Source of the DNA: Orbicella franksi
Taxonomy: Eukaryota
NCBI GenBank assembly: GCA_964199315.1
Contig: OZ116708.1
Location: 6,448,001 to 6,512,000 of the forward strand
Direction of reading: 5' to 3'
Length of the DNA: 64,000 nt
Below, piece by piece: positions 9,319 to 34,542 of the stretch (positions are counted from its first letter, which is position 1; every line of letters starts with the position of its first letter). Made by a program: the position numbers and the translations under genes. The notes below the pieces were generated by a model that was given only the letters and a program-made list of their open reading frames with translations, did not search any database and was not told where the DNA came from.

Positions 9319-9519
9319 ACGCAAGTCTGATTTGTTGTGTGGGCGTTCTGCAAGATTTGCACTTTCTGTATCAACAGTCTATTCTGTAGAACTTGGTATG
9401 CTAATTTCTTCTATTTTCATTGTTGGCACAGGAACGTCTCTAGAAGATCATGAATGCTATCTTGTGGATATGTACGCTGTCCATGTTAACGCCACAGAAA
9501 AGTGCACAAGTATACCGGG
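9319..9519 (+). CDS. Putative 5' exon of gene B (hydrophobic stretch plus Cys-containing segment)
   Basis: ...FALSVSTVYSVELGMLISSIFIVGTGTSLEDHECYLVDMYAVHVNATEKCTSIPG then gtaagt; ends in phase 2, not directly compatible with exon 11087. Confidence 0.4.
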
Positions 9520-11086: not shown

Positions 11087-11480
11087 CCACGTTATGCAGT
11101 CCACCTTGTTTACTGGTGACAAACACATCGGACATTGTTGCCATTAACTACACAACTGCAGCTGCTCATTCTATTATCTCGGGTCTAACCAGAGCTGTTG
11201 CCATAGATGTCCATTTTAGCTTGGGTTACATATTTTGGAGTGATGTAACAGAACAAAACATCAAACGCTTCCACATTGACGTAGCAAGCACGACGACAAT
11301 TGTCACTGGCATTGGAGTTTGTGATGGACTGGCGGTAGATTGGAGGACATCACAGCTGTACTGGACTGATACGACAAATGACAAAATATCGATATCAGAT
11401 CTTAATGGCAATAACCAACGCAGCCTCGTTTCCTCGGAACTGGAGGAACCCAGAGCAATAGCTCTGGACCTCGATAATGG
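11087..11480 (+). CDS. Gene B: YWTD propeller 1, first half
   Basis: IFWSD, CDGLAVDW, LYWTD, EPRAIALD; ttcttag acceptor, gtatgc donor. Confidence 0.9.
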
Positions 11481-11912
11481 GTATGCATTATTGTTATTAA
11501 TGTATCTTTTTAGAATTTATTTCTGGTTACAGAAGCTAAGATTTTTCTCGAACTAACAAACTTATGTCACTCCGCTCAATCACTTAAGAATCGGTAACTC
11601 GAATATCCTAAATTTATACAAGGGCGTGATTTCCTTTACCTTAGATGTAATAGGGTTATAAAAGATATGGTTATTTACTGATTTTAGGGGAAAAAAATAC
11701 AACACGTTGCTTTACCTGGATTATCTATGTTTTACAATTCTTTCCTTCGTTAAGCAATAACGAATTGCATATGTAGGATCATGATTATTGGTTCAACTTC
11801 TCTGGACATATTGATACGGAGTGAAATTTGTGTTCCTTCGCTGTTCTCGTATCATTCAGGACAATTGGAGGTGTGAGTTATATTTAGGGAATCTTTTGCT
11901 GACATGCAATTA

Positions 11913-11947
<35 letters not shown>

Positions 11948-12822
11948 CTTTCATTGAGGTTAATGATCTGGACTGACTGGGGAGTTAACCCTAAGATTGA
12001 AAGAGCTTCACTAACTGGAAATCAAAGGCTCGCCATTGTAACAACAGATCTTTCCTGGCCTAATGGTATTGACCTCGACAAAGGAAACAAACGAATATTT
12101 TGGGTGGATGCGGGAACTGACAAGGTCGAATCGGTCGATTACAATGGCAACGACAGAAAATTACTTTTTCAACAGAGTGGCTTACATCCGTTTGCAGTTG
12201 CATTAATTCCCCCTTTCTTATTTTTCACGGATTGGAATACGTATGACGAGTTTCACCAACTGGACGCCTCGACTGGGGAAGTGCTTCGAAGTTATAGCAT
12301 CAATGATGGGCAGCCTATGGGCATCGTACCGTACGACAGCTCACGACAACCAGCTGGTATTTAAAAGGAAATTTCATGTCATGAAAAGAGCTCGTCTATT
12401 TTGCAGTGATTGATAAACTGTCTGTCTGCCTGCCTGACCACCTGACTGACTGACTGACAGACTGACGGACTGACTGACTAATTCAGTGATTCGTTGATTG
12501 GATCGATTATATTGAAGTGATCGATAAACGGCCTGCCTGCCAGACTGACTGCCAGACTGACTGCCAGACTGACTGACTGACTGACTGACTGACGGACTGA
12601 CTAATTCACTGATTTGTTGATTGGGTCGATTATTTTGAAGTGATTGATAAACTGCCTGCCTGCCTGCCTGTCTGCCTGAATGACTGACTGACTGACTGAT
12701 TGACTATTTCACTGATTCGTTGATTGGGTCGATTGATTGATTTTTTGAATGACTGTTTGATTGATTGATTGATTGATTGATTAATTGATTAAATGATCGA
12801 TCGATCGATGAATATCAAGTTT

Positions 12823-12855
<33 letters not shown>

Positions 12856-12989
12856 GAATGGATGGATGGATGGATGGATTGTTTGTTTGGTTGGTTGGCT
12901 GGTTGGTTGTATATATTGATTGATTGACTGATCGATTAACTGATTGATTGATTAATTGACTGATTGATTGATTGATTGATTGATTGATC

Positions 12990-13026
<37 letters not shown>

Positions 13027-16000
13027 GGAAGGTGTATGCAAAAGCGCCAGGGTAACTCGCTTACGAGAGCTTAAACCATATTGAATCGAAATTTTGCCTC
13101 ATTAGCAGTATGATAATTTTAAGACATTTAAGGTCGTCTCTTTTAAGACATTTAAGGTCGTCTCTTTTAAGACTGATAGGGTACAGTGCATGTGCATTTT
13201 TTCTTTAAATTTTTGAATGCTTTATTCATGGGACGAGCCAATTTCGAGAAATCATCCGGTACTTCCCATTGAGGAGTTTCCTGCTCTTGCACTACTCAAG
13301 ATTGCGGCAATGTTACAACCCCTTATTATCCAATTTTCGCTTTATTAACTGTCAAGCCGTCTCTGACGGGAGGTAAAAACAAAAGAAAATTCAAACTTCT
13401 AGCTATAAAAGTGGCCGCGGTCGCTTATAACAGGTGGTCGCTGACAAGTTCAGAAGTCCCAAATAGAATGATTTGACTTAAAAACTTTTGGTGTTTTGAA
13501 AAACTGGTCGCCGAGGAGAGGTTGTCGCTTACGAGAGGTGGTCGCAACCGTGTTGTCTTCAGCGAAAGGCTTTTTTTTTTTCTTTTTTTTTTTTTTTTCA
13601 CCTGTACAACGCAACTTCACTTATTATCATCCTCATAATAATATAGAAAGATAAATACATACGTAAACTTTTTACATTGTTTCTAGATTCTATGTGTTCT
13701 AGTTCAGGAGTATATCATGTGTGTTCTTGTAGGTGTACATTATAAGCGGGATCGAGTATCTTCTCTCTCTTGTTTTAGTTAAAAGCGCTGGCGCCGATGG
13801 TTCTGCTTTGGTGGTGCTGCCTTTGGTCTGCTTTGGTTCATCAGCAATTTCGTCAATTGCTATGCTTGTGTCTAGGTCTTAATTCACTTTCGTGCCTAAT
13901 AATGTCATTTTACCATGTACACTGTTGTGCTCACTAAGTTTATTAGTGCTCACGCCATGAGGAAGCCGGTATTACTGCGCGCCATTATGCTCGTTTACGT
14001 ACATTATGTGACAAACTTTCTTTTACATTGTGTTTCTTTGAAGCTTCAAGTCCTTGTGCTGTTAACAATGGTGGATGCAGCCATTTTTGTGTCGCAACAA
14101 AATCTGGTTATGAATGCATTTGTCCTACTGGTTTGGCAGTAAAGCAAGATAACAAGACCTGCGAAGACAGTAAGTCTACTGAAAAAAAGTGGAAGCATTG
14201 CGTCTGACGACGAAGAATATAGTTAGCGATTTTACTCCATGCTACCCAGTCTAAAAAACCGCAAATTAGATCGCAACTCGCACATTAATTCAGTTCAAAT
14301 GGAAACAATTGCTTTTCGTTGCCAAGCCGGGAACAAGGTCGACTTTTTTTATACAGAAACGTAACTCCTGAATTATCTTTAACTATATTATACCCGTGTA
14401 ACAAATTTAGTATGAGCTTCTATATAAGTTAAGCGAAATTTTCAACATTTTTTTTTAAACCAGACGTTTATTCATGTTGTACTGTCCTCAACCCGCCAAG
14501 TGTAGTTTTAAATACTTCTTTGTTAAAGGTCGCCTCAAACCCATAGTCTTCACTCTTCCTCTTGAGATCCAAAAATAAGTTTGCTCTAATGACTCCTTTG
14601 ACGAAAAAGGAGAAGAATATATTAGAGATTTTGACCCTGTCAGGAGCTGTACAATAAGTATTTCTACATCACCGAGAGAAAAAAGTCAAGCCGTCAAATC
14701 AAGGTATGTGTTTTCATTTACTTCTTGTAATTCTTATCGTAGAAGTGAAGAAGTTTATCATTTTTGCTGACGCCGACGCCAAATCGACGAATATTATTTC
14801 ACTGGATGTTAACTACTTTGTGGTACAAATTTTGTTTCGTCATCTTGGAAATCAACGCCCAATAGCTTTGGACTTTGACCCCGTTGAAGAACGTGTGTAC
14901 TGGTCAGACATAGCAGAAGGTCTCATAATTAGCGCTTTTTTCAATGCAACTGCTGTGAAAATTTTGTTTCGCTGTAACGTGAAGAGTCCTGAAGGCTTAG
15001 CCATTGACCACGTGGCAAGAAATATTTACTGGACTGATACAGGGACCAATAGGATTGAAGTGGCTCGGCTTCATGGAACAAGCAGGAAACTGCTCATCAA
15101 AGATGGACTTGATAAGCCAAGAGCGATAATTCTGGATGAGAGAAATGGGTAAGTTAATCGGATGCCGTAAAATTGGAAGGTCGTAAAGTAATTCTTTCAG
15201 CATTGTTCTTTCTGTGAGGTGAAATCAGCCGGCGTGACATACGATAAATATTCGTCCCAGCATTCTTTTCAAGATAACATAGCTAATAGCATTTGCTCAT
15301 AATAGTGCAGATACTGTATTATTTGAAGCGAAATTGGTTACTAAAATAGAACCTCGATTTAGTTTAGTTGATTTTGTTTTTTGGTCTTTGTTAATTAACA
15401 CCACTTTTTGCTCTTTCACGTGATTTTGTACTTTTATTAATTGTCACTTGTAATTACGTAACCACTAGCACCTTAATCTTATTTAAAGCTCGTTTTTATT
15501 CAAAAATTGTAATAAATGAAGGTCTCTGACCGAAACGTTTTTTACTAAATTTTTTAATCTATTTTACGTCAGAAGTTGTCCGTCCTCACAATTTTTTAAC
15601 TTTCTATGTATGTATGTATGTATGTATGTATGTATGTATGTATGTATGTATGTATGTATGTATGTATATACGTTTTTTTTTCTTTCAGCTCGTAACCACT
15701 CCCAGACAGAATAATCTTAGCGAATTCAAAAAAAAAAACTTTCCTGCTAGGTTTTCGCCTTGATTCGGGCGAAGCCCGAATCCAGGCTAAGCACACAGCG
15801 ACCTTAAACCAGGGAGGGCTCCGTCAAGGCCAGGCTGGGCACATGGCCCAATGACTGGTCTATCTGCTGGGGGCTTGCTGGGGACCAGCTGTCAAAAGCA
15901 GGCGGGGGAGGGTGTCTTGTACTGACACCCCCAACTAGCTAGAATTTGGGTTTTCAGTGTTAAATAAGATTGTAATTGACTGTGTTTCTGGGTATTTTAC

Positions 16001-17016
16001 TCAGTTGTTTGACCTTTTTTGAGGCTTCTGTGTTGACATGGCACTCTGCTAGAGTGGTCCATGCCACGTGCATGCGTGTGGGGCCAATCTCCTAGCCAGG
16101 GGGGTTGTCAGAGGACTTCTGGCCGCTGGAACTGTCTCTGAGTCAATGCGGGCATGTTTTTGCGAATTCGGTTAGATCTATTTTTTCACCCTAATTGAAT
16201 GATACCACTACTTCAATATTTAAAATCAGCCATCAGCCGATCGATAATTTGTCCAAGGAGGAAAAGCTTTTCATACTTAGGCATTCATTCAACTCGGATA
16301 TCGATGGATGTATTAACCTCTTGTATTGCTGCGCGCCCCTTGTGTTCTTGCCTTATTCCGTGTTCAATCACAAAATGTTTCCGTACTCTTTGACGCTTTC
16401 AGCACGATGTACTGGACAGATTGGGGCGCCAGTCCAAAGATCGAGATGGCGGGGATGGATGGTTCAGCGAGACTAGCCATTGTAACTGGAAACCTTGTTT
16501 GGCCAAATGGACTTACTATCGACCAAACGACAAACCGTCTCTTCTGGGCTGATGCCAAACTAAACAAAATTGAGACATCAGACCTTACTGGAGGAAATCG
16601 ACAGCTTATATTGTCATCTGGGAACAACATCCATCCTTTTGGCCTAGTTGTGTACAACAGCATGCTGTAGTGGACCGATTGGAATATCTTGAGCGTTTCA
16701 AGCTTCAATTTAGCCAGTGGAAATCAGGATGTGATGGTAACTGGCCTGCAACTGCCGACCGACATTCACGTGTTTGATCCTTCCCTAATATTTTCAGGTT
16801 AATTATTGGATTGCTTAGTCTTTAAACTATTAACAGTACATAGTATATGAACCTAAAATGATTGCTTTCTTTTTGCTAATGTCATTTAAGAGTTGCTATG
16901 CACTAGTGTAAAACTTTTTTTAGCTTTTATAATTACCTGACATCAGGAAAGTTAGAAAAGCAAATGACAAAATACAAAGGATCCAAAAATCCACCTGTTT
17001 CTTGTTCTGTCTGTTT

Positions 17017-17052
<36 letters not shown>

Positions 17053-20000
17053 TTTTCTGAATCGAAAGTTACACAGATAATACATTTCTGAATTTTTCTA
17101 CCATCGCGGATGAACATATCTATCTGGTATGTTGCTTTACGTTCAGAGACGCAGACTCTAATAGATCAGCGTCAAAGACATTGCAATTGTAACATAAGTC
17201 CGAGGCTCTCAAGACTAAGCTCTAAATTTTCCACTTCTTCATTGCATTCAGATCTCCTCTGGTAAAAAGGGGAGTTTAAAGGGTTTTTTTTTTTTGGTTC
17301 TCTGGGACCTTGAAGTCTTGTTAGAAGACTGAGATATTGAACGTTGACTATTGCATCGCTTAATTTCTATGTCATTAGGACCCCATAATTGTTCTCAAGA
17401 CAATGGTTTATGCAGCTATTTGTGTCTTCTAAAGCCAGGGGGATTTCAGTGCGCATGTCCAACGGGTATTGCACTCAAGCCGGATGGGAAAAACTGTGAT
17501 TATGGTAAGGATGCTCAAGTGTTTCCGCAATGAGTTACTTTTTGTGTTCCCCTACATTTGTGCTAAGTTTGAGCGAAATCGATGATTTGAGCTGCGTCAC
17601 CACCTGTATTTTTTCTGCTTGGTTTTCTTATGGACACATTCTGAAACATCCTAGACTATCTAATGCGACAGATATTCCATGATTTCTTTACTGATCACAC
17701 CTTTTTTCTTTTCTTTTTTTTTTTTTTTTTTTTTTGGCTTTGTTTTTCCCCCATTAACTCCAAGGTTTGTTTTATAAGAGAGGCTCTGAAAAATTTATGA
17801 TCTTCGCTGAAGCCGATTCCGGAGAAATTTACATGGTTCCTCTCGCGGTAGAGGAAAATCCTTGCCTTCCCCTCGAAATCAACACAAACATCTCAAGACC
17901 GGTGGCAGTTGATTACGATCCAGTGGAAGGAAAGATTTATTGGACAGATGTTACCTTAAAACTGGTGGCTAGGGCCTTCCCCAACGGGTTTTCGGTGGAA
18001 ATCATTGCGCATAATAATGTGGAGACACCTGATGGGCTGGCATTGGATTATGAGGGAAGAAATATTTACTGGACTGATGCAGGGACAAGTAAAGTTGAAG
18101 TAGCGCGATTAGATGGGTCATTCAGAAAGAGCCTTATCACATCAAACATTGACAAGCCAAGAGCTTTAATCCTTCATCTGGTAGAGAGGTAATTCGGAGA
18201 TGCAGAGTTCTAACTGATTGCTTTTAGTCCATGTTATATTGACTATCATCTAAAATGAGCTCACTGCGTAATCTGGTGCAAAAGCTGCAGCATTTGGGAT
18301 AAGTATGTTGAACGTTATTATAGAGACACGAGGTTGTTCAGGCTGGAAGATAAACCACTCGTAAAATACATACGCAACTAGTTATATAACATCTTTCCTC
18401 CAGGTAGTTTCTCTCTGTAAACTTTCTTCAACTCACATATCATGACGGTGTTTGTTAAGTCGTTTGCAAAAAAAAAAGGACTACCCAACCAATCATATTC
18501 GAGTTGTTTTAATTATCAAAATGTCAAATTTTATCCTTCTAAGTTAATTAAATAATCGATTTTGTCACTTATTTTCTTAAGTCTTTTGGACCTTTATCAT
18601 GTTAATCTTTTCGCAGATTTTCTTAATTAACGTCATAATGCGCGAAGTCGTTTAGACAGAAATCACTACAAAGTCATTAAAATCCCAGGGAAAAAAAATC
18701 AAAATACAAATCCAGTATCCTGTTTATTTATGAAAAATTTGTTATTTAGAAAGATGTACTGGAGTGACTGGGGATCATCACCAAAAATTGAACAAGCCAA
18801 CATGGACGGTTCCGCCAGGACAGTTCTCGTTAGCTCCGGACTTGTGTGGGTAAATTCACTAGCCCTGGATTTCGAAAACAGACTGTTGTATTGGTGTGAT
18901 GCTAGCCTTGATCAAATAGAAAGAGTTGACTTCCAGGGAAACAACCGAGTGCTCATACTTGATTTATCAGCTGATAACCTGCATCCGTTTGGACTGGCCC
19001 TAACTGACAACGTTCTGTACTGGTCTGACTGGAACAACCAAAGTGTCCACAAATACAATATGACCTCCTCTCTCAGTGAAGTATTGGTTCAGGGAATGGG
19101 AAGGCCAATGGAATTGCATATTTATGATAAGACAAAAATCTTTAACGGTAAGCCAGCATCGATTTGATAAAATGTACATTCCCTGGGTGTCCTCCCGGGG
19201 GTCAAGCGCTGAACTGTACAGGTAGAACGAAGTGAGTTGGTGCCCATTGACAGTTCACAAAGTATGTTTTGTTAAATTGTTTGTTCATTTATTAGATGAA
19301 CAAAATACGAGAAACGTTTTGGAAGTGTTATCTACCAAGTCTCTCTTTAGGTTAAGTCCTCACGCTCATTTCAAACTTATGAAACTAAAACAAAAGTGCC
19401 TAAGTAATAACCTACTGTAATTATACGCGACTTTCATTGCTACTACAGCGTGTTGTGTGTACGTACTGCCTCGCAACTCTTCTTACCCAGTCGTGAATTT
19501 TTTTGTCCAGTGTACGTTTCAGGCTTCAATGTCTGTTTCAATCTGTATTTACGGTTCTAACAATCTTATATCTTCCACGTTCTAGAGTTAAGCGATACAT
19601 TTGGAGGAGAGTGTGGAAGACATTCCGTCTTTACTCGCGTCTTCCTTTTGAACTTTGAAAGAAAAAAGAAAAAAACATAGGGACCATAGAATTAAAAGGA
19701 AAAAGGGCAAGTCCCGCTTTAGTCACGCGTTAAGTTCGTCGTGAAATATATGCATTTTTTAAACGCAAAGCCAAGACAAAAAAATAACAAGGTAGCTCTC
19801 TCTTATCTCATAGGGTCAACCAGCTGTTCTCAACTTAATGGACACTGCAGTCACATCTGTCTTCCAAATCCACAAGGACATCAATGCTTCTGTCCAGAAG
19901 GAATACTGCTGAAGTCTGATGACGCCCTCACTTGTGAAGGAGGTACTACTCCATGCTGACTGTCAAATGATGCTCGAATATTCCTGCGTGCAACTTTATT

Positions 20001-23000
20001 AAGCAGATTCAAACCAAGAATGGATGTTGAGTTTCATGGGCCATAAGTTTTCACTTTCAACCACTGTATAGTAAGACCAAAAGTAGAACATCTTGACTAA
20101 CGCACAGTTCTCTGCCAAGATCGGCTAAAAATCTCTAAAAAGCATTTTCCTTGAGTACATGTTCTAGGGTAGTACATACTAGTTACGCAGTGGTGTTGAG
20201 TGGAGCATGAATTCAATGTTTTAATTTTGTGAAATAGTGAACCGCTGCCCACAGCTTTCGGCACCACTCCACGGCAGTCTAGAGCCTTGTTCCAATTTGC
20301 CAGGAAAAACTTGTCACTTGTCCTGTGAAAGAGGATACATCCTGAATGGGTCACCAGCACGGACATGCAACAGCGATGGGACATGGACCGGCACTCAGAC
20401 TCAGTGTAATGGTGAGTGTGCTATTGTCCCTTGATAAAAAATACAAGAAATAAATGAGAAAAACTCGATTATGCGAATGAGCAAGATATATGTGCGCCAT
20501 ATCTTTCCCCGTTGTTTTCTTTTGTTGTTGTTTTTGTTGTTGTTGCTTTTACGAAACTCCTCTCGTTACATTAATTTGAGAAAAGGGTGAAAGCCCGCTT
20601 CTCGACTAGTTTTGTTTAAAGCTAGAAAAATATTCTTTTTTTCACACGATTCTTGGCAAGCTACGTATATCGGAGACTATATCTATATTGAGTAGATGTT
20701 ACATAACAAGAAGTACCTAAACATGTATATCGCATCGTGAGTGTTAATATTACAATTTTATTGAAGCATGCTTTAATTGCAAGCAACGTAGCCTTACGTA
20801 TAGTCAATTAGACTACTGCTAATAAGCACCAACGACCAAAATATTCGTGCTATGGCTTTCAGCTGTTACATGTCCAGCTTTACCAGCACCGTCCAATGGC
20901 ATCAGGCAAAATTGCACAGGGACAGCAGTGGAGTATTACAATACAACCTGCCTCTTTGTCTGCCATCCTGGATATAATGCAGTCGGCTCCTCATCAAGAA
21001 AATGTCTTGAAAATGGAACCTGGAGTGGCCAAGAGTTCGTTTGCCAAGGTAAAAATATTTATAACCAGATTAAGCTTGCACTATTTTTTTTTTCTCAAAA
21101 GATCTAAACGCTTGACATTACATCATTGCATGCCATTAATATCATGTTTTTATCATGTACTAGTATTAATAAAACAAATTCGTACGTTATAATCAAAGCT
21201 GTCACCTGTGCGCCTTTGAGCATCCCTGCAAGAGCCATTCTGCTGACTGTGTCCTGTGGCAATACGTACGGATCAAACTGTGTCTTCGGCTGCCAAAGTG
21301 GATATGGCAGCCCTTACGGGAATGTTACTAGGACGTGCTTACAGTCTGGACAATGGAGTGGAAACGCGATCAACTTTACAGGTACCAGGCAGTATTCGTT
21401 TTAATGCACCATACACCGTCTAAAATACTACTCAGTAACTTCCATCTGAACTGCAACACGCTAGGGTTTTATCAACAACTTAGTGCAACTCAATATTCAA
21501 AGCTACTGATAACGAACACCATCGAAGAACTCCTTGGAAGGTTTCATCCGAATAACCAAAAAACAAACAAACAAACAAACAAACAAACAAACAAAAAAAC
21601 GGAAACGGTATAATGCTAGCTATGTGAGAGTCAACTGAAAGAGCGGCCTTGCTAAAAAGATCCCGTGGCATATAACATATAGTGAGTTGGAAGTTATTTC
21701 AGGACTTCACTACATCAATTGAAGTACTGGTAGCTACATCAATTTAAGTACTTGCTGTGATACTAAACCGATTGTTTAATGTTGTGTTCTTTCATATTTC
21801 AGATATGCTTCCTCCAACATTTGGCATCAAGTGCCCAGCAAGTCCATTGCTGGTATATGCAGAACGTGACATGTTTTCAGCAGAAGTAAACTGGACAGAA
21901 CCAGTTGCCACTGATAATTCAGGAATCATGCCTAGGGTGACGCCGAATTACCAACCGCCACAAAGACTCAGTCAGGGAACTCACGTGATCATATACACTG
22001 CAGAGGACCAATCAAAGAACAAAGCAACTTGTAGCTTCACTGGTAAAGTAAAAGGTGCGGATTAAACATACACGAAGTTTCATATATTTACTCTTGGTAA
22101 CATTTGTTTCAGCATATCTGTAATAGCAAATTGTTATATAGGATATAGCTTACAAAACGTGGCGTTGCATCTCACCATCTCCCCCACCCCCCCATCTCTG
22201 CACCAAAAAACACTGTTTTTAATATTTGTGGCTGCCTCGTCTTAAGTTTGTTCGTGATGTTAATACATTATTTTAACAGTTTGCTCTTTTCCGACGGGCA
22301 ATACAGTTCTATTTAAATGCTAACCATCAATTAAGTGGTCATCATTTTAATGTCAACAGTTATCAATTGCGCATCGCTGATGGTAGACCAAGGAAGTCCA
22401 CTGCGCATGAGCAGCTGCGGTAGTCATTTTGGGGTACAATGCAAGTTTTCTTGCATGATTGGTTATCGTTTGAATGGCTCGTCAACAGTCACCTGTGTTG
22501 CCCCTGGCAACAGACCCCCTGGATCATGGGATAACCCGCTGCCTATATGTCAAGGTAAGTTATACAGATGACAGCTTTCATATAATCAAGCGATCCCTTT
22601 TATCTTTACGCTCGGAATCATGCTCAATCGAGCTAAAATGTATTGGCAGTCATCAAGCTGAAACAACAACCATGATGAAACAACAGGGTATCCTTGTAAT
22701 ATTTGTTTGTTTAATTTTAATTGACAAGTTTGGCTCAATAGTTGATGTGCTGGACTCAGGAACTTGCATTTTGTGTGGTCTAAACAATGCATATTTAGCA
22801 ACTGATCTTTTCGTTTATCTGTAGCTATAACATGTACTTCTCTGCCTTCTCCATCTAATGGAGTTAAGACCGGCTGTACTCACATCGGATCAGAAACTTA
22901 TAATACTCATTGCAGTTTTACATGCAATGTTGGCTACACTCTGGTTGGTTCGCCGGCTAGGCGGTGCCTAGAAAATGGGACTTGGAGTGGAGACATGCCT

Positions 23001-26000
23001 TCTTGTCAAGGTAAGTAAAAATACAACCTTTACCATCAAAGGCTGTTAGTTATGCAGTTTTGAAAGCTGTAAAAACACCAGGCACAATGACTCACTTTGG
23101 TAGGAATATACCTGCTCCATTTCATGGTTAAACCTTTCTGTGGGCCTTTGCCGATTACGACTGATGGTTTCATAGTAGAGCAACAAGACAAATGAAAGGA
23201 AGATTAAACCAGAAACAGCTGCTTCTTTGCAGAATATTGGAAGTATGTCGGGAAAAACACAGGCTTGAAGAGTGTATTACATCAAGTTTAAAGTTCTTAA
23301 TCTCAGGAACAGTCTTAACACAAACATTACCTTAGCATTAACGCGTCAGAAGATTTTTATTTCTTTGTCCGTTTATTTAGTAATCAGTTGTGGCGCACTC
23401 ACTCCTCCAGCGCTTGGTGTCATTTCTCCACCTTCCTGCCTAGTTGGCAGTAATTATAGCCAGACATGTCAATATACTTGTGAAAGACTCGGATACGTTC
23501 TCAAGGGATCTTCTGTAAGAATGTGTGATACTAACGGACAGTGGACTGGGTCAAACGTAACACGTTGCAGAGGTAAAGTGACTTAGTTCAACCTAATGTA
23601 GACTGTTTGCTTATTTTCTTTCCTTCTACCTGCATTTCTTATTATCAGAATATTAATACGATGAACGTCTTGGCAATCATTTAGAGGAAGTACTGATCTA
23701 CTTCTGCCTTGTTAGAACTTAACCATCATTTTCCCTTATAATCACTGGTGTACTGGTCATCAACTCTTAATGCGTAGTCTTCGGTATTCTCAATTCTATT
23801 TCTTTTGTTTCGTTTTGATTTTATTTCAAAATGTAGAAGCTTTAACAATTTGTTTATTCATGGTGTTTGTCTCCCAGCAAACTGCTTGCTTTAAAAGGCT
23901 GTCTTTTTCATCGTTTGTAGATACTGCTCCTCCTTCATTTAATGACACCTGTCCTAACAATATGGTGTTCTATGCTGCTGAATGTTCGTCCAGCGGTTTA
24001 ATTACGTGGAATGAACCAGTGGCTACTGACAATTCTGGTCACGTGTCTATCAGCTACCCTACCATTCGTTCTCCTGCCAACCTTAGTATCGGTCTGTACA
24101 GTGTACTTTATTCTGCGATAGACAGCAGTGGAAACCAAGCTAACTGCACGTTTATAGTTCAGGTAGCAAGTAAGTCAATCCTCCTGTCATGAGGAAAATA
24201 CCATGATAAATAGATATATACTAAAGAGAGAAATGTTTGCAAGACTTAAATCACTTCTGATTATATCATATCCATAGTTTTATTTTAAAGATGCGGCTTT
24301 TCTCTAAAGACAGAACTGAACTTTTCTGATTCACAGGAAAGTCTTGTACTATTCTTCAAGCACCAATACACGGGGCCATAACTTCTCTTTCGTGTGGATT
24401 TTTATTTGGTTCCCTGGCTTCCTTCTCTTGTGATAAAGGATACCAAATGGCTGGGTCTCGACAGCGCTCGTGTAGAGCAGATGGAACATGGTCAGGCGAC
24501 ACAACCCTATGTAACAGTAAGTGACTGCTACCCACGTCTTTTTGATTTGCATACTTTGTGACGCAAAACGGAAATTTCGTGCAGCACTGTTATATCATTA
24601 TAGGACAGCATCACACTGGAATTGATTGCTCGCGACATTCAGTAACTTGTTGCTTCCATGCATAATACCTAATTGTATATTTTTGGATCGCTTCGGCAAA
24701 TCAGGCTCAATTAGTTTCCCGATAGCCTGAACCATGGCCTCACTAATCTCAACTGACATACCGCCGAAGCGTACCAAAAAGATACGATTGTATATGAGAA
24801 CCGTGTTGACGTATGCGAAGATACAAGAGTCGCTCGAACGATTACTGGATGTCGTTTTCCGTTATTTCCAGAATAACCAAGTGTAAGTGTTATCGGCTGA
24901 GGCTGATAATATTTGCAGTGACCTTGATAAGTCTGGATATCGCGAAAAATCGAACTTAGTAATTGTGTTAATACATATTGAACAAACATAAGTTTCATTC
25001 ACTGTTAGTGAAATCAATTTAGTTTGAAGGCTGAATGTCCACTTCATGCTAAAACGTTTCTGTTCAGCTGTTCGTGAAAATTATCCCCTTTATTTATTCT
25101 ACCTATTACGACTTTTTCCGTGGATTTTTTGGTGTTTTCCGCTTCTGCATTATCCACTTTATTTCTGCATTTCGTAAAAGGGAATGTGATCGAAACGAAA
25201 TCATCTTTGTAGCTGTGCGACCGCGCTTAACAAGTGACCAGTATCTAGAATTGTCTTAAGCCAACAGATTCTATGGAAACTGAGAGCCTACAGTGTAATA
25301 AGTATAGGTAATCGTATGAGTGCAAGTGCAATTAAAGACTTCCGCAACGACTGATATTTGAAAATTCTCTCAAACTTACACAAACCTTTAGGGGAGTGTA
25401 CTGTGAAAGAATTTACAAATATCACGAGTTGTGTAAATCCTGAATTGCTCGAACCTTCATACGATTACTCATTTATTATATGACTGCGAAAATCACAAAA
25501 GTTCACGCGTTAATTTGCACTGTGGTGCAAATTAAAAATAAACGACAAATTGGCCCGCTCTCTCTCGAGGAATGCACTTAGCGTTTCTATGCTGTTACTT
25601 TAAACATATACAAGTAAGATATCCTTGACCGTGCTTTGCTCCTTTATCAAGCACTGAAAGGAAAGAAAGCGAAACACGTGCCGCTAGCTATCAAACTTAA
25701 ACTCATTGAGCTTTATTAAGAAACAAAGCAACTTTTCCTTATTCCAACGTTATGTACAAGAGTCCCAGTTATCTTTCAAAATGGTTCATAGTTCGTGTTT
25801 GCTTTCTTCCAGTTGTTAGGTGTCCGACAATTACAGCGCCAACAGATGGAGTGATATTTCCTTATCCATGCACTTCGATCTCTGGTGTAAATTATGGAAC
25901 AGATTGCTTCTCTATGTGCAATGTTTCCGTTGGTCACCGACTGGAAGGTGCACAAAACGTATCCTGCCTCGAAAGTGGGTTTTGGAGTGCAGATACTACC

Positions 26001-27593
26001 AAGATAATATGTAGAGGTATCTAATCTAGATGTATTTTTGTACGTGGTGTATTTACCTGATAAACCAGAGAAATTGAACTTAATCATTTTCGTTATTTAG
26101 CTGTTTTGTGTTTCTCCGCGGTAGCAGGTGCACAAGACCATCTCTGACCAACCTGGTTGTTTTTTGTTTTTGTTTTTGTTTTATTTGTTTGTTTGTTTAT
26201 TTGTTTGTTTTTGTTTTTCCTGTTGATTCTTCAGCTCCACTATTCTCTAGTCTTTCTCTTCCTCTCGACCTTTTCTACACAAAATTGCCTTCATTTTATC
26301 TCTTGACCATCCAATTTCTGATTTCCATGCAACCTAGTGTCCTCAAAGTCATTCGTTTTCCTTATCTTCCATGTTTTGCAGACAAAGCAGGACTAGCTCT
26401 AAAGCACACTGAGATAGATAGTCCCTCCAAATACAACAAGATAGAGATCCACTTAGAGCATGCTCACGTTGCTGATCCATAATTTAACATTGATATCATC
26501 GGCCGTACTTATTGTGCTTGGTACATACTGTCCCTCACCAGATTTACCACACGAATCCTTAAATTTCATGCTGTATAGACACTTATCTTCTGCTTAAAAC
26601 GTATTTTATTTCTAATCGTGCAATGATATTTCTGCTGTTCTTTGGTATCCATTTAATTAGACTTCGTTATACTGCTATCTGAGTTGTCATTCAGTACAGC
26701 TAACCTTCGTGGTGACCTTTAATTCTCCTGCAAACCACCTATTATGCTAAGTGTTCTTCTTCTTGGTCCTCTCCATGTACATCCACTGACGTAATCAATA
26801 TACTCCTTATCTACTTTGCTCCTCGCAGCACACATTACAAGTTCGGTGCTTAACGAACACAGTCCATTTCGTTTGCACATTGGGGAACTCTATAGCATTA
26901 TCAGGCGTCTTATCAGTTATCTTATTGGCCGCAAAACCTTTCGTTAGCTTTAGTTCACCTTGCGTAATGAACTCACTGCCATTACTGATTATATTTGGAG
27001 CCTATTGATTTTCTCCAGAGCGTATTTGACTCCCCTTGTATCAAGCTTCTACAGGAGTGAGTGATATCGGCTCCCAACAAAACCCCCAATCATACAGAAC
27101 AAGTTCATCTAATAGATTTACACATAACTAATTCACTTCTGGAATCATCCTCTCCGCCAAGAGAGATTAGTTTCCAATAATCTTTCCAAACTACCACTTA
27201 ACAGATGTTCAACCTCCCAGTATTCAATGCCCACACGATGTGGAGATTCCCACAGAAACTGGACAACCATTTGCAAGCGCGACGTGGCAAGTACCAAACC
27301 CCACCGACAACTCTAACGAGTCCGTAAGCCTCAGTGGTTTGCTTCCGCCCCAAAAGTTGGATGTTGGCAATAAGCACATCACATACATAGCGACGGATTC
27401 AGCTGGGCTCATTGGAAGCTGTACATTTTCTATTTATGTCAGAGGTAGGATATGTTTTATCTTAAAGTCATCGAATTCCAATTCTAAACGTGCTCATCTT
27501 TTGGAGCTGTTGCTTTACCCATTTCAGCTCTAATAGCAGGAATCCACAAGATTGGATTAGAGTTTCGATTTCCAACTTTCCGTTCAAGTTCTC

Positions 27594-27626
<33 letters not shown>

Positions 27627-30600
27627 GAGAAAGCTATGCAGCCCCCACTTTTATGTGTCTCTTGATGTCACCCATTTACAAGGCGTAAAGCGATTAAGAG
27701 CTGAATATATTTTATTTATACGAGGTTCTTTTTACAGAATCCCAAGTGTTATATAGAAAAATCAAAAAATTTCCTCGCTACTCTTTACAGAAATTGTTCA
27801 TAACGTCAACAATTCTTATCTTCTCAACTCACTTAATAATTGTTCCCGCTTTCTTCTTTAAATTTTCTAGAAAATTAAGGATGACTCTTAGCATCTCAGC
27901 TGAATAACTTTGTAAATTGCATTATCTTATCAACGTCCTGATTTCAATTAAATAACAAAAATGCGGGTCATTGAGCTTGCTTCTAAATTGTAAGCACTTT
28001 AAGCGAATATAAGGGCTGTTTCTACCAGGCTAAGCTGTTGCTATTGTAACCATTTACGCGAAAAGATGTGCAAACCTTTTTTTACCAATGAATCGGTATT
28101 CTGTTTGAGATTTCTTACTGTAGAATGAACTGATTAAGAGTGATAGTATTGGTGCATCAATTTATAAGTTCTCAAAACAGCCGCAAACTGTTGTTAGGCC
28201 ACCTAAATCGTCTATATAACAAAATTCTCGGTTTTAGTTGGCTCTCCACGCACCTGACTGTCATTCAGTTGGCGTGCGATCGCGAAGATGCTCAATAACA
28301 GGTGCGTATCCAGTTACAACCTTTTGTAACTATATACCTGTGATTGGACGCTCCGACATCCACGCAACAATTAGCTAGGCGCGCTTTAAAGACTTCCTCC
28401 TCTACTGTTTGTAGCACTTCTTCATCTCAAAATTTGTTGCTGGTACCATTAATTAGTAATTAGACCACAGGCCGTAAATTCATTAAGAGATGGTGCTCGT
28501 AATTTCAAATGGGCCTTGCCAACGCCATTAGACCAGACCAATTATGATTTCTGGCTGCCATATTAATAACCCATTTTCAAAACATCATTTAAAACATTTT
28601 ATGGACATTTTTAAAGCCCTGGACCATTTAATATTTTATCATGTAAAGTTTTCAATGTCTTGTTTTAATTGTTAGACTTGCTCTAATGCTTTGCTTTTTT
28701 AAAATTTTAATGTGTCTCATATTTTATTTATTTATAATTTTTTTTATATATTACCGTTTTATATTTGAGAATCTTTCTATGTTATCGATTTTCAATAGTT
28801 CATCTTTTTATTCTGAAACTATTTATATGAGGGCCACTGGTTTCTCAGTTGCTAAGGTTATGTTGTACCCACAATAATTATAACTAACGTTAATTATCAT
28901 CATCATTATCATCATCATCATCATCAACATCATTTATATCATTATTATGTTCACAAACAGATCTTGAACCGCCTAAGATTGCAAACTGTCCCGATGACAT
29001 CCGCAAGACGTCTTCAACGAAGCTGACAAAGATGTTTTTGCCAGGAGTCACTGTCACAGATAATGTTGGCGTTCACTTATTTACAACAAGCAGACAAAAT
29101 GGAAGCGACTTCACATGGGGAGAGCACAACGTAACTTATACTGCATCAGATATAGCAGGAAATACTGCCAAGTGCCATTTCCAAGTCATTGTAACCGGTA
29201 GATACATATAAGTTATTGAACGTTATTTTGTTAAAGACAAAAAGACAAAAGACGAAAAGACAAAAAAAAAAAATAAATAAATAACAAACCCTTGGGAAAT
29301 ACCTGGCAAAAAATGCAAGGCTTGCGCGGGCGCTTAATCAAAAATTAAATTTTAGTAAATCGAGTAACTAGTTTTCATTTATCTTTACCTTTGTAAAAGA
29401 TTACACCTGTCCGGATTTACAACCACCTTTGAATGGAGCTAAGGCATGTGAGACGTGGCTAAAGGGCATGTTTTGCACCGTACACTGCAATGAAGGTTTT
29501 GGGTTCGTGGATCAACCAGAAGCACTGTATGTGTGTAGTCCTAAGGGAGCCTGGATAAATGCAGGGAAAGGAACGCCCAGTCTTCCCGACTGCTCAAGTA
29601 AGAGAAGGTGCTATGTTCTAAACGTGTTATTCTAAACAAACCTAATATGATGTGCGGCATTTTCCTCCCATTTTTTAGCACATTATCTTCGTTCAATTTG
29701 TACCAGTTTTAAGGTATAATTTCGTACCTTGCGTACTATAATGGTTTAATAAAAATATCATTATTTATATGTTTATTTTATGACAAGATAGTCTTGAATC
29801 CGAGTGTTTCGATTTGTTATTTATTGGTCTGGATTCAGCCATACGGACTGTTTCCATGGAAACGGTTATATATTTTTTTTGTTTTTTTGTTTTTGTTTGT
29901 TTGTTTTCGAAAGCCGGACAAATCAAAATTTGCCACTAGCCCAAGTGCCATATAATAAGCTACTTACCTAGCTTGCTCGAGCCGTTAAGTGAAATACTGG
30001 CCCTTGCTCGTTTTAGCACAGACCTCGGGCCAATATTTCCCAGAGAGGCTATTGCTCTCCGTTATTAAGAGGTAAATATCTTAATATTGCAGAGACTCAC
30101 ATGCCCAAAGAAGCCGTGGTAAATGGAGATGTACATTATTTAGTTGACAAGTGCGGCGGAGAGAGCGTGAACGAAGTCATCGCCGGCAACTTTATAGACC
30201 TTTTCAGCAACTCGCCGTTTGGTATGGCTGGAGGCTGCAATGGGAAGTGCACCATCGACAACGTGAGGGTTGAATGCGGAAACCAAACTGAGGCACGCCG
30301 GCGAAGAAAGGCAGCTGATGGCAAGCAAGCGTTTAAAATTCCCCTAACTGTGCATTTCTCTTTAAAAGTTCCGTTACCAAGCAACGCCCCCTTATTTGAC
30401 CTCAACCAGACCAGTCAACAAATATCAAATAACCTGCTCGAGGCATTGAACGAAACAGACCTGACTCTGGATATCAGCGGAGTTATTATAGTATATGATT
30501 TATCAAAGCCGCCAGTGTTTCGGCTTACCAGTCTTGTTTGTAGTGAAGGACAAGTCCAAAGAGGGACAAGATGCGGTAAGAAGTTTCCTTTTGCTTTTGA

Positions 30601-31315
30601 CGGTCTTCATTTTTGGTTTTAAATGTTCTATTACATCTAGGGAGAACTCTAACCTGTCTAACAAATAGTCTGTCTTTTAATACTGTCCAAGTTAAACTGT
30701 TCACTAACTAGTGTACATATATTTTTTTAAGAAAATAGGTCACCTGACTTTACAAAAATCAGAAAAATTAAATATTGTAGGTACCGTCTTGAAAGGCAAG
30801 ATAAGAATATACGGTGCACTTACCTTGCTCGCAGTTTAATAGCTTATTAATAGCTAATTGATAGTTAATTAACAACTTAGCAAATTTCTTGCCTTCGTTT
30901 TGCAGCATTTGCATTAGTATACAAGTAGAATTCTACTAATAGTAATTAGAACACAGATGCTGACACTACTTTGTTTTGTTTATTCTACTCTTTGTATTAG
31001 TGAACTGTCCGCTTGGGTATTTCTTTAACACCACTGGTTGCCAGGCATGCGCAGTGGATGAATACCAAGATCAAGAGGCCCAGACGTCATGTTTATCCTG
31101 TCCATCCGGTACAACTACATTTGGACAAACGGCATCAAAGTGGCACGAAAATTGTCAAGGTTACTTGAAAATGAAGCTTTAACTTGTTTTATTCTGTTAA
31201 ACAACACATCTCTTGGCTAGAGGCAATTTCAAATGCAAGGAAAACGTGATCGCATGATTTTAAGATATGAAACCAATAATTTTTTTACGATAACTACAGA
31301 AATTCTCGCGCGTTT

Positions 31316-31355
<40 letters not shown>

Positions 31356-32941
31356 GATTTATAATTCATGCGATGCGTCTACAAACGAGAGTGGATAGTT
31401 CGACAACTTGTTATCGTAAAAAACAAATTGATGTCAGTTTTTAATGCGTCTGTCCTTTTATTGACAATGAATTTCGTCATAACTTTGTCAAAGTAGTCTC
31501 CGGATCCACTTGGCTATCGCCTCGTGGATCCAGAGCTACTTTGACAATGTTATGACGAAATTCAAGATCAATAACAGGACAGACGCATGAAAAAACGACG
31601 TGAAATTGTTAAATTGCGTCATATTGCTGCATGACAATAAGAGGTTAGCACTAGCAGGCCTGTCAAGTCTTGAGTTGGGCGATGAAGTGTAAGTTTGCTC
31701 GCCGCGGAAGAATCCCATAATCTGTCGCCATTTAATTATTTTTGTTGACATGTTGACATTTCCTTTCAGAAATTCCCAGCCCTTCCAACCTTGAAGAACA
31801 AGGTTTATCCAAGCCAATTCTATATTCAATCATTGCAATAGGAATCTGCGTATTTATTGGACTGATTGGTCTCACCATCTTTTGTGTGCAGAAACACTGT
31901 GTGTAAGTTCTTTCATTACTAAATAAAAATGTACTTCACGAAAGCGTTAAGTTAAAAAATATGTCTATCCATCTATCTATTTTGTGGACAATTTCCTTCG
32001 ATCAGTTGGTGTTGGATCTAGATGGATCAGCTTCATTTTAAACAGAATGAGTTGAAAACGTTCCAGTGCCCCAAATCAATAAATTGTCTTAACCTGCTTA
32101 ATTCCTATGTTTTTACGGTATATAACTTTGCATAAGAGTAGGAGTAATTTTCCAACTGCAGTGATGCTTATGATTCGGGTTTATGGGTCACCCACACAAT
32201 AATAATGCAAATCTCAAAAAACAAACTAAATCTTGACATGAAATAGTGACACCACTCGTAGCCTCTTTAGAATCGATCCATTTAATAAGTTAACCATCCT
32301 CATCTTTATCAATTTACATTTATACGCTATATGCACATTATAGTGATTAAATTAACTTTTTTTTTTCAGGATTTAAACAATTTTTTACACGAGCGCGTTG
32401 AATATGAGATGCTAGATAGCCAACCAGGCGCGGAGCGTCGAGTTGGCTATAATCATCTCATATCCAACAAGCGCAAGTAGAATAATTGTTTAATTAAAAA
32501 CGCCACTAAAAAATAGCAGACTAGACTAGAATAACAATAACATTACCAAAAATCACTCGTGCACTTACCATTTTGGTAGAGCATGGTATAATGGCTCATA
32601 ACCCATGATGGCTAAGCCAATGAAATCTCTCGAATTGCATTATCTAATGATCCAGTTTTTGATAATTTTAATTATTTTATTTCTATAGTGCTGGCAAAAC
32701 AATGTCACGAAACGAAAGACGTACTTACCCGTACCCAGTGGATGACGATATGGGACGCAGCAATCCAACATATGCTGTTACTGAAACTATTCAAACGAAG
32801 GATCCATTTTCTATAGAAATCTGTGAATTTCAGAAGCGCGGTCTTTGTTTTGACAGTGTGAATTACCTTTCGCAAGATGATGCACAAGATGCAGCTGGAA
32901 ATGATTTCAGAAGACTTAATTTTAATCAGTCAGAGGTGTAG
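11087..32941 (+). CDS. Gene B: LRP-like (3x YWTD propeller-EGF) / Sushi-HYR-GCC chimeric type-I membrane receptor, one in-frame stop
   Basis: 26 exons with GT-AG boundaries and continuous phase (6500 nt, ~2165 codons); exons listed individually; TAG at 16668-16670. Confidence 0.9.
11959..12356 (+). CDS. Gene B: YWTD propeller 1, second half
   Basis: MIWTDWG-NPKIERASLTG, WPNGIDLD, IFWVDAG, HPFAVAL, FFTDW. Confidence 0.9.
12420..13030. repeat. Compound (GACT)/(GATT)/(ATCT)/(ATGG) microsatellite with a ~100-bp higher-order unit repeated about 3 times
   Basis: gactgactaattcactgattcgttgattgggtcgatt recurs near 12475, 12597 and 12700. Confidence 0.85.
14044..14169 (+). CDS. Gene B: EGF 1
   Basis: [38 protein letters not shown]. 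Confidence 0.9.
14743..15148 (+). CDS. Gene B: YWTD propeller 2, first half
   Basis: PIALDFDPVEERVYWSD, SPEGLAIDHVARNIYWTDTG. Confidence 0.9.
15605..15664. repeat. (TATG)n microsatellite
   Basis: Direct reading. Confidence 0.95.
16403..16797 (+). CDS. Gene B: YWTD propeller 2, second half, with premature TAG
   Basis: MYWTDWGASPKIE...HPFGLVVYNSML*WTDWNILSVS...PTDIHVFD; frame continues to a gttaat donor. Confidence 0.85.
17379..17504 (+). CDS. Gene B: EGF 2
   Basis: [36 protein letters not shown]. Confidence 0.9.
17765..18188 (+). CDS. Gene B: YWTD propeller 3, first half
   Basis: PVAVDYDPVEGKIYWTD, PDGLALDYEGRNIYWTDAG. Confidence 0.9.
18750..19147 (+). CDS. Gene B: YWTD propeller 3, second half
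   Basis: MYWSDWGSSPKIEQANMDG, LYWCDA, HPFGLAL, LYWSDW. Confidence 0.9.
19814..19942 (+). CDS. Gene B: EGF 3
   Basis: CSQLNGHCSHICLPNPQGHQCFCPEG...TCE. Confidence 0.9.
20238..20411 (+). CDS. Gene B: Sushi/CCP 1
   Basis: CPQLSAPLHG...CHLSCERGYILNGSPARTCNSDGTWTG...C; phase 1-1. Confidence 0.9.
20863..21048 (+). CDS. Gene B: Sushi 2
   Basis: CPALPAPSNG...CLFVCHPGY...[10 protein letters not shown]..FVC. Confidence 0.9.
21199..21381 (+). CDS. Gene B: Sushi 3 (last Cys replaced by Phe)
   Basis: CAPLSIP...CVFGCQSGY...TCLQSGQWSGNAINFT. Confidence 0.85.
21803..22054 (+). CDS. Gene B: HYR 1
   Basis: PPTFGIKCP...[13 protein letters not shown]...GTHVIIYTAEDQSKNKATCSF. Confidence 0.9.
22360..22554 (+). 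CDS. Gene B: Sushi 4
   Basis: CASL...CKFSCMIGYRLNGSSTVTC...WDNPLPIC. Confidence 0.9.
22825..23010 (+). CDS. Gene B: Sushi 5
   Basis: Not in ORF track: CTSLPSPSNGVKTGC...[32 protein letters not shown]. Confidence 0.9.
23381..23572 (+). CDS. Gene B: Sushi 6
   Basis: CGALTPPALG...CQYTCERLGYVLKGSSVRMCDTNGQWTG...C. Confidence 0.9.
23921..24169 (+). CDS. Gene B: HYR 2
   Basis: DTAPPSFNDTCP...TWNEPVATDNSG...YSAIDSSGNQANCTFIVQV. Confidence 0.9.
24337..24516 (+). CDS. Gene B: Sushi 7
   Basis: Not in ORF track: CTILQAPIHG...FSCDKGYQMAGSRQRSCRADGTWSGDTTLC. Confidence 0.9.
25813..26016 (+). CDS. Gene B: Sushi 8
   Basis: CPTITAPTDGVIFPYPC...CFSMC...SCLESGFWS...C. Confidence 0.9.
27205..27444 (+). CDS. 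Gene B: HYR 3
   Basis: DVQPPSIQCP...TWQVPNPTDNS...ITYIATDSAGLIGSCTF. Confidence 0.9.
28961..29197 (+). CDS. Gene B: HYR 4
   Basis: DLEPPKIANCPDDI...VTDNVG...FTWGEHNVTYTASDIAGNTAKCHF. Confidence 0.9.
29400..29597 (+). CDS. Gene B: Sushi 9 (SVEP1-type)
   Basis: CPDLQPPLNGAKACETW...FCTVHCNEGF...YVC...W...LPDC. Confidence 0.9.
30093..30575 (+). CDS. Gene B: ~160-aa module with basic furin-type site (SEA-like, inferred)
   Basis: HYLVDKC...CTIDNVRVEC...ARRRRKAA...LVCSEGQVQRGTRC; phase 1-1. Confidence 0.8.
31001..31159 (+). CDS. Gene B: GCC2/GCC3 (ephrin-receptor-like) Cys repeat
   Basis: NCPLGYFFNTTGCQACAVDEYQDQEAQTSCLSCPSGTTT...C. Confidence 0.9.
31290..31615. mobile_element. Non-autonomous element with an internal ~85-bp inverted repeat
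   Basis: Arms ~31423-31509 and ~31524-31610 (gcgtctgtcc...gaatttcgtcataac.ttgtcaaagtag / ctactttgacaatgttatgacgaaattc...ggacagacgc). Confidence 0.65.
31770..31902 (+). CDS. Gene B: transmembrane exon
   Basis: PILYSIIAIGICVFIGLIGLTIFCVQKHC; phase-2 gtaagt donor. Confidence 0.85.
32689..32941 (+). CDS. Gene B: cytoplasmic tail, last exon
   Basis: Phase-2 acceptor; contains NPTY (32762-32773); ends NQSEV-TAG. Confidence 0.8.
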
Positions 32942-33806: not shown

Positions 33807-34542
33807 ATATTTAGCTGGATGATATATGCAAATTAGGTCACGTGACCTGTCGGGACTATCTTTAGCTCAAATTTCTTTTTAGAGAAATGGCACCACTTTT
33901 TACAGCATCTAGGAAGCTGGCATTATCTTTATAATGTTAAGAATAGTACGTACTTTATATCCGTGCCCGGACTTGTTGAGAGCTTTTTTTAAAACAAAAG
34001 CATAAATTAGGAATTTACTTTTATTGGGAGACCGGGCAATAGTACAAAAAGCCGTTTATTTTCAAAATTGATGAAAAATTTAACAACGTCCGGGAACAGA
34101 TGTTTTGTTGCTAACCTTTTGAGCTATCTGGGTACATTCAAGGTAAATGACTCCAGATGTAAACTGGTGCCATATTCGCTCAAAGAATTTCTGGAAGTTT
34201 TTGGCCGCCAGAAGTAAAAGGTAAGGTAAAGTCTGCATACGAGCCAAGTGGCCCATCAGGCCGGAGCTTATCCCGTTTCTGTAGCATGAAGCGACTAGGA
34301 GTATTTCTACTCCCCCCTGGATGGGACGCTAGTCCATCGCAGGGTTACCCCCGGCATTAAGTTCGCCGGTACCCATTTATACACCTGGGTGGAGAGAGGC
34401 AGTGTGAGAGTAAAGTGTCTTGCCCAAGGACACAACACAATGTCCCCGGCCAGGGCTCGAACCCGGACCGCTCGATCCGGAGACGAGCGCACTAACCATG
34501 AGGCCACCGCGCCTAATTTGCATATATCATCCAGCTAAATAT
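33807..34542. mobile_element. MITE with 31-bp perfect TIRs, interrupted by a SINE
   Basis: atatttagctggatgatatatgcaaattagg at 33807-33837 and its reverse complement at 34512-34542. Confidence 0.8.
34216..34514 (-). mobile_element. tRNA-derived SINE (V-core-like), near full length
   Basis: Minus strand: aggcgcggTGGCCTCATGGttag (A box), ggGTTCGAGCCc (B box), gtgttgtgtccttgggcaagacact core, (accttt)-type tail. Confidence 0.85.

Follow-up and report, generated by a model that had tools for sequence, protein, structure and literature searches.

A transcribed coral receptor gene joining LRP-type propellers to a Sushi/HYR stalk, with a premature stop in Orbicella franksi

A 27-exon receptor gene at the locus

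We analyzed a 64,000-nucleotide stretch of the Orbicella franksi genome (assembly GCA_964199315.1, contig OZ116708.1, positions 6,448,001 to 6,512,000; hereafter the window), which is eukaryotic, with ~39% G+C. Its plus strand carries a gene, here called gene B, in which YWTD propellers of the low-density lipoprotein receptor-related protein (LRP) type are followed by a stalk of Sushi and HYR domains, a transmembrane (TM) segment, and a cytoplasmic tail with an NPxY motif. We consider it probable that gene B is one transcribed coral receptor gene of 27 exons, with intact orthologues, and that the copy in the window is a young null allele or pseudogene broken by a stop codon.

Gene B extends from 9450 to 32941 and contains 2,189 codons if the stop is ignored (Table 1). 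In this model, which was built from splice sites and reading frames, all introns among the 26 exons in 11087–32941 have GT/AG boundaries. The first of these exons, exon A, is entered in phase 1 and therefore requires an upstream coding exon, which we found in the signal-peptide exon of Table 1; a similar peptide, WICTLSVL, is located upstream of exon A in a locus from a more distant coral (L008, below). An earlier interpretation made from the letters of the window (the sequence-only reading) had placed the gene at 11087–32941, which gives the correct end and misses the start; the intact frame that it implied overlooked an in-frame TAG at codon 554.

Pfam searches identified six Ldl_recept_b pieces making up three propellers, three FXa_inhibition-type EGF domains, seven Sushi domains above threshold, four HYR domains, and one Ephrin_rec_like (GCC2_GCC3, here GCC) repeat. 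Together with cysteine patterns, and with Sushi 8 marginal, these assignments reproduce exactly the order previously proposed, Sushi3-HYR-Sushi3-HYR-Sushi2-HYR2-Sushi-module-GCC-TM. No exon piece matched Ldl_recept_a, and no D-x-S-D-E or Cys signature was found in the three plus-strand frames of 4200–33500, upholding the reported absence of LDLa repeats. The predicted product contains 34 N-glycosylation sequons, one R-x-[KR]-R site, one NPxY motif, and no PPP[ST]P motif. Module boundaries from EGF 1 through GCC are all in phase 1, as had been noted for the stalk exons, and phase-2 introns occur only inside the three propellers and after the TM exon.

A candidate cytoplasmic exon at 32370–32476 was rejected as spurious, as it falls within a stretch that is absent from the orthologue, and the conserved donor at 31902 joins 32689 instead. 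The stretch itself (32212–32611, 400 bp of the last intron) is missing in the sister species and bears a strong acceptor and an open reading frame (ORF) that mimic a cytoplasmic exon.

Table 1. Features of gene B in window coordinates
Feature	Coordinates	Strand	Evidence and remarks
Signal-peptide exon, MNAILWICTLSMLTPQKSAQVYR	9450-9519	+	Phase-1 GTAAGT donor; ORF and donor conserved in sister-species locus
Propeller 1	11087-11480, 11959-12356	+	Phase-2 split; Ldl_recept_b E 5e-15, 9e-19; splice sites and lengths conserved
EGF 1	14044-14169	+	Phase 1-1; FXa_inhibition E 2e-14; boundaries confirmed by transcript L010
Propeller 2 (exons D, E)	14743-15148, 16403-16797	+	Ldl_recept_b E 3e-19, 4e-23; junctions confirmed by L010
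In-frame TAG, codon 554	16668-16670	+	Replaces Tyr of LYWTDW motif in propeller 2
EGF 2	17379-17504	+	FXa_inhibition E 3e-13
Propeller 3 (exons G, H)	17765-18188, 18750-19147	+	Ldl_recept_b; tandem acceptors 18749, 18753
EGF 3	19814-19942	+	Phase 1-1; FXa_inhibition E 4e-11; H/I junction confirmed by L010; ends LRP half
Sushi 1-3	20238-20411, 20863-21048, 21199-21381	+	Sushi E 5e-10, 4e-10, 2e-6
HYR 1	21803-22054	+	HYR E 2e-18
Sushi 4-6	22360-22554, 22825-23010, 23381-23572	+	Sushi E 3e-6, 7e-12, 2e-7
HYR 2	23921-24169	+	HYR E 6e-16
Sushi 7	24337-24516	+	Sushi E 2e-11
Sushi 8	25813-26016	+	Marginal: E 0.004, 18 bits against a cut-off of 20.7
HYR 3 and HYR 4	27205-27444, 28961-29197	+	HYR E 4e-15, 5e-17
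Sushi-like module 9	29400-29597	+	Cys/Trp pattern only, no Pfam match; 34-38% identical to two gene C exons
Putative SEA-like juxtamembrane module (exon W)	30093-30575	+	Conserved RRRR at 30296-30307, in beta2-beta3 loop of model
Ephrin_rec_like (GCC2_GCC3) repeat	31001-31159	+	E 2e-8
Transmembrane exon, SIIAIGICVFIGLIGLTIFCV	31770-31902	+	Phase-2 GTAAGT donor, joins 32689
Cytoplasmic tail exon	32689-32941	+	NPTY 32762-32773, QSEV 32927-32938, stop 32939-32941

Orthologues are intact and under purifying selection

The orthologous locus of a sister species was reached by walking along ENA contig ERZ25067546 ctg58268. All 26 downstream exons are present there (24 of the same length, two differing by 3 or 6 nt), with GT/AG boundaries throughout, matching phases, and an uninterrupted frame of 2,169 codons. 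The encoded protein is 88% identical to that of the window, with synonymous divergence (Ks) of 0.24, nonsynonymous divergence (Ka) of 0.059, and a Ka/Ks of 0.25. Taken separately, the LRP half has a Ka/Ks of 0.18, the Sushi/HYR stalk one of 0.29, and the SEA-like module one of 0.21; low ratios in both halves indicate that the LRP half and the stalk are under the same purifying selection.

Further loci came from more distant corals, L008 from ERZ25067872 and L009 and L011 from ERZ25073751. Around the propeller-to-Sushi junction, exon content and order in L008 and L009 match those of gene B, and in L011 this order carries on through exon W, GCC, the TM exon, and an NPxY-bearing tail. Within L008 (ERZ25067872 ctg19427, 15150–20034), a Sushi2-Sushi3-HYR1-Sushi4 block is apparently tandemly repeated two to three times, from which it follows that stalk length differs between species. 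The genome of the sea anemone Actinostola sp. cb2023 (GCA_033675265.1; PMC12250223) has a locus with one propeller and EGF, followed by Sushi/HYR modules and exon W. Corals thus have propeller-EGF units, Sushi/HYR, the SEA-like module, GCC, and TM combined, in this order, within a single gene, with a one-propeller version in Actinostola. The layout is an old hexacorallian design under purifying selection, which several corals share and a sea anemone has in reduced form, rather than a one-off chimera.

Outside this group, an echinoderm protein from Amphiura named SVEP1-like covers 99% of the Actinostola stalk and contains the stalk cassette only, with no Ldl_recept_b on record. Per-exon homologue searches, which were subject to a length filter, returned almost exclusively genomic single-exon ORFs for that reason. 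When a propeller exon and the Actinostola stalk were searched against the ESM Atlas, generic LRP or SRPX/SVEP1 clusters were returned, none combining Ldl_recept_b with Sushi/HYR, and literature searches on YWTD with Sushi and HYR, and on Ldl_recept_b with HYR and Sushi, recovered no account of this architecture. Its parts are known ones, and it has no name in the literature searched.

A premature stop interrupts propeller 2 of a transcribed gene

The frame of gene B is broken in exon E, which reads VVYNSML-stop-WTDWNILSVS. The sister species has TAC where the window has TAG, and exon E ORFs from five other species are all open, each with the LYWTDW motif and its Tyr present. Approximately 70 more database ORFs of this exon have full read-through length. 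The sole same-species match in a database of 5.8 billion proteins is a 114-residue ORF ending at the same stop. Because of this premature stop, gene B probably makes no receptor in the window species.

One contig, L010 (Ga0099807_1103517), is a spliced transcript that runs through EGF 1, both propeller 2 exons, EGF 2, both propeller 3 exons, and EGF 3. Five of the six introns within its span have been removed exactly at the predicted sites, and gene B is therefore transcribed. The TAG is present in L010, as determined by an exact-pattern scan with the third codon base left free. In L010, exon G is spliced 4 nt beyond the predicted acceptor (exon start 18754, not 18750), producing a frameshift; at the exon H acceptor of L009 only the in-frame AG exists, which identifies the in-frame acceptor as the conserved one.

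A working receptor could still be made if the stop were bypassed by skipping of exons D and E, by stop-codon readthrough, or by A-to-I editing of UAG to UGG. Skipping would be clean, as the two exons total 801 nt (406 + 395), remain in frame, and correspond exactly to propeller 2; moreover, the downstream exons bear no further disabling lesion and have a Ka/Ks resembling that of the upstream part. However, the sole transcript seen contains exons D and E with the TAG unedited, and TAG-TGG is not known to be a readthrough context. We regard bypass as improbable. Somewhat less credible still is a role as a secreted decoy for the truncated 553-residue product, which has propeller 1, EGF 1, and two thirds of the second propeller. 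Both the signal peptide and propeller 1 are intact 5' of the stop, and the mRNA is present, but a six-bladed propeller left incomplete would probably not fold, the stop lies far enough upstream of the last exon junction that nonsense-mediated decay is expected, and the downstream exons, which should decay if only the decoy were of use, are intact.

The propeller and Sushi/HYR halves form a single gene

EGF 3 ends at 19942 in phase 1, and Sushi 1 starts at 20238, also in phase 1. A 3' end, a promoter, and an exon for a new signal peptide could not all fit into the intervening 295 bp. In GenBank, a protein from Stylophora pistillata named "Low-density lipoprotein receptor-related protein 4, partial" spans propeller 3 to the end of Sushi 1; the sequence-only reading had anticipated that pipelines would name the gene LRP4-like, and this model carries such a name.

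Two observations could be taken to mean that the LRP and Sushi/HYR halves are separate head-to-tail genes. L010 retains the EGF3/Sushi1 intron (19943–20237), and a frame reading through it stops five codons beyond the EGF 3 donor; in addition, the Actinostola annotation divides the locus into two models. Yet the first Actinostola model (523 aa) itself covers propeller, EGF, Sushi, and HYR matches, and L010 is continuous from EGF 3, unspliced, into Sushi 1, so that two genes at this locus appear very unlikely. An exact-pattern search of JGI contigs for the spliced EGF3/Sushi1 junction gave no match and is uninformative. Given the short gap, the matching phases, an exon structure and order conserved in four corals, and the crossing of the junction by both L010 (from EGF 1 to Sushi 1) and the Stylophora model, we conclude that the LRP half and the Sushi/HYR half are a single gene, as first proposed.

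The lesion is real and recent

The TAG is also present in contig L007 (JGI 3300010021, Ga0133905_1007503), the source of the 114-residue ORF; aligned with the window over 1157 bp, this contig has 98.6% identity, 10 mismatches, and 2 indels. Identity to the window ranges from 98.6% to 99.5% for L007 and L010. Since both contigs carry the TAG and each differs from the window elsewhere, the stop is a real allele on at least two haplotypes rather than an assembly slip. The alternative that the TAG is an assembly or sequencing error in an intact gene would require a difference of just one base, TAC to TAG, but the same base in contigs of two different JGI data sets, both diverging from the window elsewhere, largely refutes it and makes it the least plausible of all.

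With L008 and L009 as outgroups, the Tyr554-to-stop change is derived on the window lineage. So is the change that cost Sushi 3 its fourth Cys (C1112F in a numbering that omits the signal exon), where the window has NAINFT and the sister species NAINCL. Nonsynonymous (N) and synonymous (S) changes number 35:33 on the window lineage and 34:48 on the sister lineage (p = 0.25), a difference that is not significant as a test for relaxed selection on the window lineage. Differences within the species are 6 N:4 S. Gene B otherwise has no frameshift and no lost splice site, which argues that the lesion is young. Taken from three TAG-bearing sequences, the most likely status of gene B in the window species is that of a young null allele or pseudogene.

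A putative SEA-like juxtamembrane module with a conserved basic site

Exon W matched no Pfam family. A search of 1.84 billion representatives returned only 48 relatives, of which most are fragments of single-exon ORFs and none is an annotated full-length protein. Their alignment contains conserved cysteines, a VECG motif, and a near-invariant R-R-[KR]-R; the G/SVVV autoproteolysis motif of SEA domains is absent from it, R-R-[KR]-R being found instead. Given this alignment, AlphaFold modeled exon W confidently, with a predicted local distance difference test (pLDDT) score of 83.6 and a predicted template modeling score (pTM) of 0.77, in a beta-alpha-beta-beta-alpha-beta topology that places the basic site in the low-confidence beta2-beta3 loop.

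Foldseek comparison of the model to PDB and Swiss-Prot gave no significant match, the best being a thyroglobulin linker. Comparison to AlphaFold Database (AFDB) clusters gave matches at E ~1e-5 from molluscs, brachiopods, sea urchins, and amphioxus, with SVEP1 and SCUBE3 among the protein names, and in the ESM Atlas a vertebrate SCUBE2 cluster was matched over 128 aligned residues with a TM-score of 0.51. We read exon W as a putative divergent SEA-like domain, equivalent to the unit found ahead of the Ephrin_rec_like repeats of SVEP1- and SCUBE-type proteins. Juxtamembrane SEA or SEA-like domains with which it can be compared are found in MUC16, TMPRSS6, Gpr126/ADGRG6, Trop2, dystroglycan, and the Notch HD.

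Convertases cleave the juxtamembrane domains of Gpr126 and, at S1, Notch. By analogy with these, the conserved RRRR of exon W may be cleaved by a convertase. The "furin module" of the sequence-only reading has a conserved furin-type site and folds, in the model, like a SEA domain.

The cytoplasmic tail keeps NPxY and changes rapidly

The tail exon encodes NPTY and a C-terminal QSEV, and it lacks PPP[ST]P, as expected from the first description. NPxY is kept in the three corals examined, in the form NPAY in the sister species and L011. The C-terminal SEV is shared with the sister species and absent from L011, which ends differently. Thus, in the comparison of the tail with that of megalin, the endocytic motif is the better-supported part, and the SEV end does not hold up as a conserved feature.

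Across the TM exon and tail (31770–32941), 29 nonsynonymous and 5 synonymous differences separate the window from the sister species, a Ka/Ks of 1.64 that differs from the rest of gene B (Fisher p = 1e-5). These counts suggest that the cytoplasmic tail has changed fast or adaptively, with NPxY kept. An endocytic or ligand-capturing function may be proposed by inference.

Relation to known receptors and to neighboring genes

Like LRP4, LRP5, and LRP6, gene B encodes tandem units of a YWTD six-blade propeller and an EGF domain, and its single-propeller chains score best to LRP6 and LRP4 (~130 bits), above ApoER2, VLDLR, LDLR, and nidogen. A single TM helix and a tail with NPxY are shared with LRP1/2/4 and LDLR. 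Gene B differs from LRP4/5/6 in having three propellers rather than four, in lacking LDLa and PPPSP, and in interposing ~1100 residues of Sushi/HYR, SEA-like module, and GCC between propellers and membrane.

The stalk resembles SVEP1 (polydom) and SVEP1-like invertebrate proteins in its HYR-HYR-Sushi-[SEA-like module]-Ephrin_rec_like cassette. In contrast to SVEP1, gene B has an LRP propeller head, a TM segment, and an NPxY tail, and lacks the VWA domain, EGF_CA array, and pentraxin. Pfam detects only Sushi, HYR, and Ephrin_rec_like in the stalk. SCUBE1-3 likewise have the module before Ephrin_rec_like repeats, as in the SCUBE2 cluster and a scallop "SCUBE3" (E 1e-5), whereas gene B is without CUB and the EGF_CA run, is membrane-anchored, and is only 13–22% identical.

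On the minus strand, an SVEP1-like giant, gene C, extends from ~64 kb to 43 kb and runs off the window at 64000. It comprises HYR, Sushi, and several Ephrin_rec_like exons, a TM segment near 44367–44161, and, as assigned by eye, two huge EGF_CA exons at 54322–52601 and 51942–51001 and a pentraxin/LamG-like exon at 49884–49213. Two copies of the SEA-like module occur at 58602–58351 with 56705–56451, and at 46423–45959, with basic sites RRRRS and RSKRA. The HYR-HYR-Sushi-module-GCC cassette is present twice in gene C, at 33–39% identity to gene B. Identity this low excludes a recent duplication of the gene B cassette from gene C and indicates that the paralogy is old.

Upstream of gene B, at 4122–3676 on the minus strand, a third gene is represented by an exon with a TSP1-like and an EGF-like module after a long His-rich run. 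Frames resembling the C-terminal part of a non-LTR retrotransposon reverse transcriptase are found at 62197–61625 (minus strand) and 2577–3164 (plus strand), one of them inside a gene C intron. Downstream of gene B, a short repeat (34219–34514 and 34632–34688) matches intronic DNA of the sister locus in opposite orientation and is probably a dispersed repeat.

Discussion

If the stop is ignored, gene B would encode a type I membrane protein of 2,189 residues. A signal peptide would be followed by three LRP4/5/6-type YWTD propeller-EGF units, nine Sushi and four HYR domains, the SEA-like module with its furin-type RRRR, one Ephrin_rec_like repeat, a TM helix, and an NPxY tail of ~90 residues. 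In the intact orthologues, we infer that the propellers would bind protein ligands at the tip of a long rigid stalk, that a proprotein convertase would cut the SEA-like module and leave the receptor in two chains, like LRP1, Notch, and Gpr126, and that the NPxY tail would recruit PTB-domain adaptors leading to endocytosis. In the window species, a recent Tyr-to-stop change at codon 554 would leave the gene still transcribed and the receptor unable to be made.

More tentatively, these genes might constitute an undescribed hexacorallian receptor class. An LDLa-free LRP4/5/6-type head would be held ~40–50 nm from the membrane on an SVEP1-type stalk, convertase splitting of the SEA-like module would give a non-covalent two-chain receptor, and internalization would proceed through NPxY. 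Such a receptor could be sensitive to shear or ligand and serve to capture Wnt-pathway modulators, matrix proteins, or microbes, with copies gained and lost quickly between coral species. We regard this fuller picture as possible and, on balance, doubtful.

The single transcribed gene with intact orthologues and a stop-broken copy in the window, which we favor, bears on both the family and its annotation. The locus indicates that exon shuffling in phase 1-1 placed LRP-type propellers on a stalk of the SVEP1/SCUBE type early in the history of hexacorallians and that selection then kept the product, and names such as "LRP4, partial" or "SVEP1-like" conceal the resulting family. A concrete processing step, open to testing, is offered by the conserved convertase site of the SEA-like module. 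In the genome of the window, gene B should be annotated as stop-interrupted and not as an intact receptor, and it would stand as a dated example of very recent receptor gene loss.

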